The notes beneath the pieces are model-generated. The model was given only the letters and a program-made list of their open reading frames with translations, was not told where the DNA came from and made no database searches. From sequence record NC_004629.1: a DNA stretch of 64,000 nucleotides; one strand, written 5' to 3'. Below, piece after piece: positions 9,248 to 12,010 of this stretch; position 1 is the stretch's first letter; each line of letters starts with the position of its first letter. A program made the position numbers and the translations under genes.

Positions 9248-9391
9248 ATGCAAGTACGAATTGAGGTAATCAATAGTGAGGGTAATCTGGATATCGAAGA
9301 ACGGGTTGATATCCACCCAATAAAAGGGTTAACGGCCTGGATGGTCGTTCTAGCTATCAAAGGTCTTGTAGCTAGCTTTGCACGTAAGTAA
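9248..9391 (+). CDS. Small hypothetical protein, 47 aa, with hydrophobic C-terminal helix (MQVRIEVINSEG...ASFARK)
   Basis: AAGGAG RBS, ATG 9248, TAA 9389-9391; flanked by two hairpins. Confidence 0.7.
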   Translation: MQVRIEVINSEGNLDIEERVDIHPIKGLTAWMVVLAIKGLVASFARK

Positions 9392-9402
9392 GACGACATA
9401 AA

Positions 9403-9441
9403 CCCCTCTCCATGTGGAGAGGGGCCTGTCTTTATTTTTTT
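9403..9441. terminator. Bidirectional terminator
   Basis: CCCCTCTCCA-TG-TGGAGAGGGG with a T-tract, between convergent genes. Confidence 0.8.
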
Positions 9442-9939
9442 TTATTTAGTTAACGGCTTGTTTAATTCATTTAACTGGTTATTGTTATTAACAGCCTCAT
9501 TATGAGTAATATTCCTACATAATTCAATTATGTATTCTACCTCAGAATAAGCTAATTCAAAGAATTCAGTTAATGACATATTAGATAAGCTACCTACTTT
9601 ATACTTGAAGAAATCTCTAGTCAGTCTCCTTCTCAACCCACCTTCGATAAAATCCTCTTTAGGATTTACTTTATTTAACCACATGGGTCCGTTTTCTGGT
9701 GAACCGATATCGTAATCAAGTAGATATGCTTCTCTTGTTAAACGTGCTGCTGTAGACGGTCTTACTGCCCCTACTGTCGATAATAGTCTATCTAAGTGTG
9801 TATCATCTTCAGTTAACTTATCATAACCAAAGTTTGGATGTAGGATGTGGCCACTATCTTCCGTGAAAGTGGCCTCAAGACGACTATATCTCAGATCATT
9901 AACTACACCATCCGGTTTGACTTCGAGGCCGCCAAAGTA
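9442..9939 (-). CDS. 165-codon frame downstream of gp77; T-domain / T4 gp51-like tail-assembly chaperone part, probably expressed by -1 frameshift
   Basis: Open from 9957 to 9442, with the first ATG only at 9684. C-terminal MSLTEFFELAYSEVEYIIELC resembles chaperone T domains (inference). Confidence 0.6.
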   Translation of the reverse strand, partial: YFGGLEVKPDGVVNDLRYSRLEATFTEDSGHILHPNFGYDKLTEDDTHLDRLLSTVGAVRPSTAARLTREAYLLDYDIGSPENGPMWLNKVNPKEDFIEGGLRRRLTRDFFKYKVGSLSNMSLTEFFELAYSEVEYIIELCRNITHNEAVNNNNQLNELNKPLTK

Positions 9940-11504
9940 AAAAAAGTTGACAGCATGTCAATAGGGATTAAGTGTGGGAAACGTTCTTTAAATTTAGTAG
10001 CAGCAGGTGACTCACATACTGGACAATTCCAACTTGTAATTGCAATCATTCCAATTAGTTGTGAATCAATGAAGTTACTCACCGCATTAATAAAGCGGTC
10101 ATTATATTCCGGTGTGGATAGAATATTAGTTAAGAACTTTTCAATAGTTTCACGATTAGTGGTTGCAGTACGAATATTGTCTTCAGAACTTTCACCATCG
10201 TCATCTTCACGTACTTTAATTTCTTTAACAAAATGTGAGAACTGACGGGCAATAGAGATCTTTTGTAAACGTGCAATATACTGAGAACGTTGTGGTCCAT
10301 CAACCGGCTCATTAAAACTACCTTGAGTCATATCGATAATTGAGTTAATCCAACTATCACCAGACTCTCGGCGATCAGCAATTGTGCACATCTCAAGAAC
10401 AACACCAACGTCACCAAACATTTCAGTTACTTGAGTTTCAATACGGAATCCTTCTTTATAAGTCTTAAGATCAGATTCAGTGCATGCATTAAACTTACGT
10501 GCAATATATTTCTTTTGTTCTTCTGAGAATGCCAGTAGATCATATTGAACAAGCGTTGACATATTAAGTTTCGCTGTTTCAATATGGTTACATGTATTGG
10601 CATCTGCAATACATGGATAACTATAATTAAATCCATCTGGGTACATAGTCGCTGCTAGTGCATGATGTAAGAACGGCTCATCAGCTACTGAGATAACATG
10701 CTCTAGATCAGTTGGGGTGTTGAACTTATAGTTGGATTGAATAACACATGCAAGTGCTAAACTACTAACCATGTTAAGTAACACAGCTGCCATGTTTGAG
10801 AACAGCATACCTTTTGATTCAGCGCCTAGCCGGATCTTTAATTGTGCTAGACGTGCTTGTAGGGCAGCTACTTCAGTACCAGTAGGTGCACGTAGTTTTA
10901 CCCAAATACCTGAATGAGGTAGGAAAGTATCATATGGCGTACCGATGTTAGCTTTACGTGTTAGGAAAACTAGAGTTTCATCATCGGTCATTTTACGACC
11001 ACTGGTATTAAATACAGGTCGTCCAGGTCGAATGATCTTTTCACCATAAGGAATTTCACTAGACCATTCAGAGCCTTCTCGGGCAGTTGCACCAATTGGC
11101 GAATCTTCAACAATAGAGTGAGCTAAGCCCTCCAGAATAGCAGCTGTCCACTTTACACCATCACTAGTGTCATCTACTTTATTATCAGCAAATGCTTTAA
11201 ATAGTTCTTTATTGTGATCCAGGAAATTATAAACAGTCTGGGGATTCTCACGTAGTAAAGTAAGAATGCTAGCACTATCTTTAATAGCCGGTTCAGAAGC
11301 ATCCCGGATATTTCCAGTTTTAGCATTACGTGGAATACGTAGTTTAATTTCTTTTTGATCAGGAACGAAAGGTGGAGTTTCCACCTCGTCATTATTTTCA
11401 ATACTAGAGTCAGGATCGTGTTGCGCATTGATCTCATCAATTTGATCTAGTAAATTCTCTTCTGGAGTATCATCGTACTCATTATCGAAGTCAGCAGTAG
11501 CCAT
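9903..11504 (-). CDS. gp77; possible tail/baseplate-hub assembly chaperone (T4 gp26 / lambda G-like)
   Basis: 533 aa, acidic N-terminus, CPVC near the C-terminus; function inferred. Confidence 0.7.
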   Translation of the reverse strand: MATADFDNEYDDTPEENLLDQIDEINAQHDPDSSIENNDEVETPPFVPDQKEIKLRIPRNAKTGNIRDASEPAIKDSASILTLLRENPQTVYNFLDHNKELFKAFADNKVDDTSDGVKWTAAILEGLAHSIVEDSPIGATAREGSEWSSEIPYGEKIIRPGRPVFNTSGRKMTDDETLVFLTRKANIGTPYDTFLPHSGIWVKLRAPTGTEVAALQARLAQLKIRLGAESKGMLFSNMAAVLLNMVSSLALACVIQSNYKFNTPTDLEHVISVADEPFLHHALAATMYPDGFNYSYPCIADANTCNHIETAKLNMSTLVQYDLLAFSEEQKKYIARKFNACTESDLKTYKEGFRIETQVTEMFGDVGVVLEMCTIADRRESGDSWINSIIDMTQGSFNEPVDGPQRSQYIARLQKISIARQFSHFVKEIKVREDDDGESSEDNIRTATTNRETIEKFLTNILSTPEYNDRFINAVSNFIDSQLIGMIAITSWNCPVCESPAATKFKERFPHLIPIDMLSTFFTLAASKSNRMV

Positions 11505-11515
11505 TTAAAACTCCA

Positions 11516-12010
11516 TTATTGTTGAATTAGTTTTTCGTCCCAACCAGCTTCTCGAAGAGTGCCGATCATCGCTAGGATTACACCATCAATACCGCGTTCA
11601 ATAGCACCTTCAATACCAGTGTATTTAGTAACAAGTTCACTGATGAGTTTTAGTTCATCTTCATTATTTGCTGGACCAACCTTACCTTGATGTTGTACAT
11701 ATAGGACACTGATAATTTTAGTTAGTCGATTAAGGTCAGCAATAACTGTTTGTAAGTTCTTTTGGAATCCAGTAGGATCAGATAACGTCGGAATGATTTC
11801 ATTGATCTTATTAATAACTGGATTAATGAATACTTCAGTTTGTAGAATACGTTTACCTACGGAACCTGCTAGTACATTGACAACATCCCAACCATCGCGG
11901 TTAAGAATATGATCAGCTGCGGCAGCTGATGCTCCAACTGCACGTTCAAATAGACGTAGCGTCTTTTCCTGTTCTTTAGTTAGAGTTGGTTCTTTAGCTT
12001 TATTTGACAT
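11516..12010 (-). CDS. Hypothetical protein (gp78 by synteny)
   Basis: 164-aa ORF, GGAG RBS. Confidence 0.8.
   Translation of the reverse strand: MSNKAKEPTLTKEQEKTLRLFERAVGASAAAADHILNRDGWDVVNVLAGSVGKRILQTEVFINPVINKINEIIPTLSDPTGFQKNLQTVIADLNRLTKIISVLYVQHQGKVGPANNEDELKLISELVTKYTGIEGAIERGIDGVILAMIGTLREAGWDEKLIQQ

Follow-up and report, generated by a model that had tools for sequence, protein, structure and literature searches.

A conserved U-run at the end of gp77 in phage phiKZ and its jumbo-phage relatives probably directs a −1 frameshift to a longer isoform

Introduction

It is well established that phages use programmed −1 frameshifts to make C-terminally longer isoforms of morphogenesis proteins, and the principle is not new to the locus described here, the end of gene gp77 (PHIKZ077) of Pseudomonas phage phiKZ. 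The DNA analyzed is a stretch of 64,000 nucleotides from record NC_004629.1 (phiKZ 62001–126000; hereafter the window, in whose coordinates positions are given), of which 9300–11600 is identical (100%) to 71300–73600 of AF399011. Among the closest described systems, the contractile-tailed phage P2 makes gpE and gpE+E′ by a −1 slip on a run of T residues that is followed by a G. In E. coli dnaX the slip leads into an early stop and so gives a shorter form, at ∼50%, and it depends on a Shine-Dalgarno-like element upstream and a hairpin downstream. The tail chaperones gpG and gpGT of phage lambda reportedly depend on a frameshift that is conserved among long-tailed phages, a finding said to go back to Xu et al. 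in 2004.

Like lambda G/GT, the gp77 locus would encode a short and a long protein that share their N-terminal body, and the long one would arise by a low-efficiency −1 slip shortly before the upstream open reading frame (ORF) ends. As in lambda, the arrangement outlasts sequence conservation, the protein may be absent from the virion, and the two forms would stand in a ratio of a few per cent. Unlike the lambda pair, gp77 is 533 aa long as against ∼140 aa for the lambda upstream protein, it does not lie between the tube and tape-measure genes (relatives carry the same module), and it falls in no Pfam or PHROG chaperone family, with tail-chaperone models reaching E values of 2.0–2.8 at a match probability of ∼0.1. 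With P2 E/E+E′ the locus has in common that phiKZ is a myovirus, that the U-run is of the U_UUU_UUN type and that one isoform carries a C-terminal extension, but size, gene position and family differ. It also resembles the tau/gamma arrangement of E. coli dnaX, a tandem-slip heptamer within a long ORF and two isoforms with a common N-terminal body; at gp77, in contrast, the slip lengthens the protein, a stimulator was not found and the yield looks low. The gp77 locus would work like G/GT or P2 E/E+E′ but lies outside those families.

A programmed −1 frameshift from gp77 into the downstream frame was proposed in a first-pass annotation made from the sequence alone, with the remark that no description of this locus was known. 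Our searches agree with that remark, as no description of a frameshift at the gp77/PHIKZ077 locus of phiKZ or jumbo phages was found in the open literature. Here we present comparative evidence that strongly supports the proposal, together with published proteomics that are consistent with it, and we conclude that a −1 ribosomal frameshift at the U-run probably yields a longer gp77 isoform.

Results

The two reading frames at the end of gp77

The zero frame of PHIKZ077 (9903–11504, minus strand) encodes the 533-aa major product, also known as cg18, and ends in a TAG stop. A U_UUU_UUU heptamer stands in the gp77 register at 9939–9945; the first-pass annotation had placed it 11 codons before the stop, and we likewise count 11 sense codons and then TAG. 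The −1 frame on the same strand is open from stop to stop over 9442–9957, running from 9957 to a TAA at 9442–9444, and its 165 codons after the run form a conserved domain (PHROG 12109). As originally stated, the first 85 of these codons contain no ATG, GTG or TTG, and the first such codon is number 86 of 165. Both frames are open in a minus-strand overlap zone at 9903–9957, which holds the heptamer, and the frame change must therefore fall within it. The phiKZ record annotates the last 80 codons only of the −1 frame, as PHIKZ076.4 (9442–9684, minus strand), a later addition derived from RNA-seq. A lone run of seven T residues means little, and such runs are depleted in the window (17 seen against 32.8 expected from shuffles); the significance of this one comes from the conservation of the arrangement in which it stands.

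Conservation of the −1 arrangement

The arrangement was followed in 29 hand-checked lineages, made up of nine genera or groups around Pseudomonas, six metagenome contigs with gp77 homologues at 24–53% identity, and fourteen distant phages (Xoo-sp14, Ea277G, pEa_SNUABM_54, RSF1, SA002, AH06, PCH45, AgentSmith, SPN3US, Eowyn, Kwan, Halocynthia phage JM-2012, Yong XC32 and Yaphecito). Besides the metagenome contigs these lineages span phages of Pseudomonas, Xanthomonas, Erwinia, Ralstonia, Salmonella, Serratia, Klebsiella, Vibrio, Bacillus and Halocynthia, at gp77 identities from ∼20% to 100%. A scan of IMG/VR gave a further 71 loci, a few of which duplicate known phages, and 69 of them were analyzable. 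Relative to the gp77 homologue, whose end it overlaps, the downstream ORF lies in the −1 frame in 29/29 lineages, and the −1 frame holds the domain in 69/69 IMG/VR loci (hidden Markov model E values of 4e-8 to 7e-63). An in-register TTT TTN is present within the overlap in 29/29 lineages and in 68/69 IMG/VR loci, the remaining locus reading GTT TTT. The zero-frame tail that follows the run varies from 8 to 44 codons, and the relative frame is constant at −1 throughout. Conservation of the arrangement thus extends over about ninety lineages. A tblastn search with the −1 piece matched 21 distant Pseudomonas jumbo-phage records at 32–41% identity, and most of these matches begin at or near its first residue and run from the last part of the gp77 homologue into the small ORF that follows.

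Among close relatives, the 121-nt junction was recovered at full length in 47/47 Phikzvirus records with 98–100% identity and no change of length, and gp77 is 533 aa in every Phikzvirus annotation inspected. An A8 tract in relatives, which would have merged the two frames into one continuous ORF, had been named as the observation that would speak for an error; none of the 47 records departs from the phiKZ length. The arrangement at the end of gp77 is no assembly error. The comparison of orthologues suggested with the original proposal finds the −1 overlap conserved and the slippery site as well, though in a weaker form in some lineages.

Several observations were made alongside. In Ea277G, PCH45 and Yaphecito the zero-frame tail of 37–44 codons overlaps the −1 frame to give a dual-coding stretch of ∼130 nt, and both readings of this overlap (∼40 codons) look conserved among the three. 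In Pseudomonas phage RVTF4 the −1 frame is broken once and the remaining domain is annotated in another frame, which reflects either a sequencing error or a true interruption in that isolate. Listed as "hypothetical protein, partial [Klebsiella pneumoniae]", a 96-aa product of a 288-nt contig shares 89% identity with the −1 piece; the contig looks like phiKZ-like phage DNA within a Klebsiella assembly.

Protein-level selection on the −1 frame

The −1 pieces of 28 lineages are 149–176 aa long, can be aligned from end to end and have the motifs AY..DYGI.DH, HPKE and F.E/LP in common. In the Pseudomonas clade, protein similarity starts at the first residues after the run. The 85 residues encoded at 9685–9939 in phiKZ, which precede any start codon and whose lack of conservation had been named as evidence to the contrary, match relatives at E values of 7e-23 and 1e-16. 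Across four Phikzvirus genomes the −1 piece has seven variable sites, and the changes are synonymous at 6/7 when read in the −1 frame, as compared with 1/7 and 0/7 in the other two frames. The −1 frame is thus under selection as protein upstream of any start codon.

The first NTG codon of the −1 piece ranges from codon 9 to codon 137 between lineages, and databases therefore hold solely truncated versions of the domain (80–186 aa). In phiKZ, the ATG of gp77 is preceded at a distance of 7 nt by a GGAG ribosome-binding motif and the gp78 ATG has one as well, while the ATG of PHIKZ076.4 is without it. We also looked for proteins in which the two parts form a single ORF. There is no such form among 20 gp77 homologues (485–633 aa). 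A profile of the −1 domain drew 595 representative clusters at 50% identity from 1.84 billion proteins, and the top 150 of these include no fused form, all being 80–186 aa with the exception of P0123. P0123 was considered as a long single-ORF form and rejected as uninformative, since its 1.6-kb contig changes frame at least three times. The absence of a fused form from these sets suggests that selection maintains the short product while also preserving a route to the long one.

The U-run as a nucleotide element

The first codon at the site is TTT in 29/29 lineages and the second is TTT in 21, TTC in 6, TTA in 1 and TTG in 1, even though Phe elsewhere in the same 29 genes is encoded by TTC 373 times and by TTT 208 times; these counts are inflated by shared ancestry, although the lineages are 60–80% diverged in protein. 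A T stands before the codon pair in 20/29 lineages as compared with 8.9 expected (P about 1.5e-5). TTT also stands at this site in several G+C-rich lineages where that codon is otherwise very rare, and in two lineages the zero frame encodes F-L rather than F-F with the run still kept. These patterns at synonymous sites indicate that the U-run is under selection as nucleotides, against codon bias. The full U_UUU_UUN form is found in 20/29 lineages and 47/68 IMG/VR loci, the others having A or G in front of UUU_UUY. Over the 68 IMG/VR loci the run measures 5–6 in 29 and 7–8 in 39, of which 12 have 8.

RNA structure around the junction

Two RNA elements had been put forward as possible stimulators, a stem pairing 9930–9921 with 9879–9871 and an alternative hairpin at 9849–9874. 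The segments are present as described, but we find no support for a stimulatory role. The long stem is missing from both the minimum-free-energy and the centroid fold of the phiKZ junction, which folds no better than shuffled sequence (z = −0.80, with 40/200 shuffles at least as good). RNAalifold found no pair in a consensus of 14 junctions, z-scores of folds computed lineage by lineage were unremarkable, and an Rfam search of the junction returned no match. A 10-bp hairpin ∼56 nt past the run, in the part coding for S-R-L..D-L, occurs in some lineages of the Pseudomonas clade; it is perfect over 10 bp in two lineages, seemingly with compensatory changes between them. As a stimulator this hairpin was rejected, as it does no better than column shuffles (72/500, in 14 lineages) and is absent in phiKZ.

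Expression and sedimentation in published data

In a published time course, RNA of PHIKZ078, PHIKZ077 and PHIKZ076.4 stands at ∼2–7 units from 2 to 10 min, where early-gene RNA reaches several hundred to ∼7000 units (Gerovac 2024, PMC10914614). RNA this close to zero over the first 10 min indicates that the unit from gp78 through gp77 to 076.4 is not early. In the Churi paper the gp77 homologue is counted as an early-expressed protein, an assignment that the RNA time course contradicts (Gerovac 2024, PMC10914614).

For the gradient proteomics of the same study, samples taken at 10, 20 and 30 min were combined, and proteins were quantified by intensity-based absolute quantification (iBAQ) (Gerovac 2024, PMC10914614). 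Peptides of PHIKZ076.4 reach a log10 iBAQ of 9.08, compared with 10.7 for gp77, a ratio of ∼2%, and their signal peaks in fractions 4–7, like RNA polymerase complexes, while that of the 18-kDa gp78 peaks in fractions 2–3 (Gerovac 2024, PMC10914614). This sedimentation is far heavier than expected of a free 9-kDa protein. The PHIKZ076.4 signal fits a minor long isoform or a complex and does not itself prove the junction. As an estimate of efficiency the ratio comes from one proteomic data set; a yield this low is consistent with the absence of a detected conserved stimulator.

Neighboring features

PHIKZ078 (11516–12010, minus strand) encodes 164 aa of PHROG 14050, a family of unknown function, and belongs to the same minus-strand unit as gp77 in phiKZ; a homologue lies upstream of the gp77 homologue in every locus examined. 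Just past the stop of the −1 frame, a G+C-rich, terminator-like hairpin lies at 9403–9424 on both strands. Since the scan predicts a terminator on each strand here, the hairpin is probably a bidirectional terminator; the same scan found no terminator-like site on the minus strand between the zero-frame stop and the −1 stop. The hairpin separates the convergent plus-strand genes PHIKZ076.1–076.3 from the minus-strand gp78–gp77 unit. The neighbors of gp77 are the helicase gene PHIKZ075, the small ORFs PHIKZ076–076.4, PHIKZ078 and the head proteins PHIKZ079/080, along with virion-polymerase genes. From Pseudomonas to Bacillus phages the gene order gp79-like, gp78-like, gp77-like, −1 ORF is retained, with the gp79-like and gp78-like genes divergent at most loci and on the same strand in a few, such as SPN3US, Kwan and AgentSmith. 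In phage Churi, a 47-aa homologue of PHIKZ076.3 (949–1092, equivalent to window 9248–9391 on the other strand) is labelled "baseplate hub protein", an odd name for a small ORF.

Sequence and fold relationships of gp77

Gp77 is core gene cg18 of the Chimalliviridae, where it is listed as "hypothetical" (Prichard et al. 2023). It has no match in Pfam, and the PHROG families of gp77 (4585) and of the −1 domain (12109) are both of unknown function. No chain in the PDB matches either part by sequence or profile. The AlphaFold model of gp77 (pLDDT 78, pTM 0.81) returned nothing from a Foldseek search of the PDB; fold matches of the −1 domain in the PDB were discarded as meaningless because its model is poor (pLDDT 56). 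Against BFVD, the gp77 model matched jumbo-phage homologues and, more weakly, proteins that bear the name of a T4-like baseplate hub assembly protein or chaperone. For these targets of 250–285 aa the E values are 3e-5 to 4e-3 with a probability of 1.00 and a target TM of 0.5–0.59, comparing one predicted structure with another. Two depositors have named gp77 homologues "baseplate protein" or "putative baseplate hub assembly protein", while no member of the gp77 alignment matches a hub-assembly model of Pfam or PHROG at cut-offs as loose as E ≤ 10 or E ≤ 1. The text of the phiKZ structural atlas does not mention gp77, although structures alone do not prove absence from the virion. The missing PDB match and the silence of the atlas together suggest that gp77 is not a modelled virion component.

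Discussion

We propose that PHIKZ078, PHIKZ077 and the downstream frame would be read from one minus-strand transcript ending at the 9403–9424 hairpin, as the layout suggests. Most ribosomes would stay in the PHIKZ077 frame, and the 533-aa protein would be released at the TAG stop. A small share, in the range of a few per cent, would slip back by one base while two Phe-tRNAs occupy U_UUU_UUU, both being able to re-pair with UUU; such tandem slippage is suggested by the conserved register and by the U_UUU_UUN form. The slipped ribosomes would read 165 more codons in the −1 frame and so produce a long isoform of ∼77 kDa, in which the first 522 residues are common to both products and the 11-residue tail is replaced by the 165-residue conserved C-terminal domain. 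On this proposal the slip would be ribosomal rather than transcriptional, and it would need no RNA stimulator.

Several points weigh against this proposal. The site is weaker, with A or G before TTT TTY or with runs of 5–6, in 9/29 lineages and 22/69 IMG/VR loci, and one IMG/VR locus has GTT TTT. Both Phe residues are invariant in the protein alignment, so part of the conservation of the run could reflect protein constraint. We found neither a conserved downstream structure nor an upstream Shine-Dalgarno-like stimulator. The trans-frame protein is itself a product predicted from sequence, and since the detected peptides come from the annotated 80-aa part, they alone do not distinguish a fusion from a small protein in a complex.

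The same long isoform could also be made if the phage RNA polymerase stutters on the A/T run, so that a minority of mRNAs carry an altered run. The conserved element is indeed a homopolymer, and in 39/68 IMG/VR loci it is 7–8 long; yet many lineages have runs of just 5 or 6 and the IMG/VR runs span 5–8, where known bacterial transcriptional slippage uses runs of ∼9 or more. PhiKZ genes of this kind are transcribed by unusual phage-encoded multisubunit polymerases, and this, together with the failure to find an RNA stimulator of ribosomal slippage, counts for stuttering. Stuttering needs no register, however, and the run is always in tandem-tRNA register (NNT TTT TTN or NNN TTT TTY). On balance we regard transcriptional slippage as unlikely. 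Less likely still, in our view, is that there are two separate genes, with the downstream frame translated alone, from the annotated ATG of the 80-aa PHIKZ076.4 or, close to where gp77 ends, through re-initiation or a non-canonical start. All public records carry annotation of this kind, and some lineages have an ATG or TTG near the upstream stop (for example 201phi2-1 gp135 and the L018 contig). But the positions of the starts are not conserved, whereas conservation begins at the run, ahead of any start codon, in phiKZ, Phabio, mg13, AH06, AgentSmith and others. The −1 relation, moreover, holds in every lineage despite a tail of 8–44 codons, whereas the relative frame of independent genes would be expected to vary. 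The ATG annotated for PHIKZ076.4 is without a GGAG motif, and the peptides sediment as a large species. We give practically no credence to the idea that the homopolymer was miscalled when phiKZ was sequenced in 2002, or that a true frameshift mutation cut the gene. Homopolymer runs are classic places for sequencing error, the downstream frame of RVTF4 is broken once and one short metagenome contig has several frame changes, but the arrangement recurs in 47 close relatives, each sequenced independently, and in about ninety distant lineages, the downstream frame is under purifying selection and the zero-frame stop is retained everywhere. Ribosomal frameshifting at the U-run is therefore the explanation that we prefer.

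What the two isoforms do is a more tentative matter. The first-pass annotation called them a lambda G/GT-like tail chaperone pair. Membership of that family fails on size, gene position, family and fold, but the analogy to a morphogenetic chaperone is a reasonable one in light of the T4-like hub fold match, the near-zero early RNA and the lack of a match to any chain of a virion structure. Gp77 may be a non-virion morphogenesis factor of the middle or late period whose fold is kin to T4-type baseplate hub assembly proteins, a suggestion from structural models that we put at somewhat less than even. It draws on matches of predicted to predicted folds with no sequence-level link. Gp77 differs from the T4 proteins in being twice as long and in having an unmatched sequence family, and the fold likeness is one of model to model. 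We know of no frameshift in T4 baseplate hub assembly proteins. If the isoforms act as a chaperone pair, the common body could bind one partner and the extension recruit another, as in lambda G/GT. More speculative, and in our opinion rather improbable, is the idea that the pair supplies the nucleus-forming jumbo phages with their missing assembly chaperone for the tail or baseplate hub, or that the long isoform has a function particular to the chimallivirus life cycle; the latter is considered because cg18 belongs to the core genome of the family.

The interest of the locus comes from the depth of its conservation and from the prominence of the phages concerned. Gp77 is one of roughly 70 core genes of a family in which phiKZ, PhiPA3, 201phi2-1, Goslar-type phages and SPN3US serve as models for jumbo-phage therapy and the phage nucleus. 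The 26 annotated records that we inspected show the second part as a small orphan ORF starting from whichever internal start the gene caller chose. If the frameshift is real, all 226 phage records with a gp77 homologue would be misannotated at this locus, and results for gp77 and the small ORF from proteomics, Tn-seq and knock-downs would need to be read jointly. It would also add a deeply conserved phage recoding event that operates without a detectable RNA stimulator. Should the isoform pair prove to be the missing assembly chaperone, T4-type hub assembly proteins and the frameshifted G/GT chaperones would be joined as one ancient solution.

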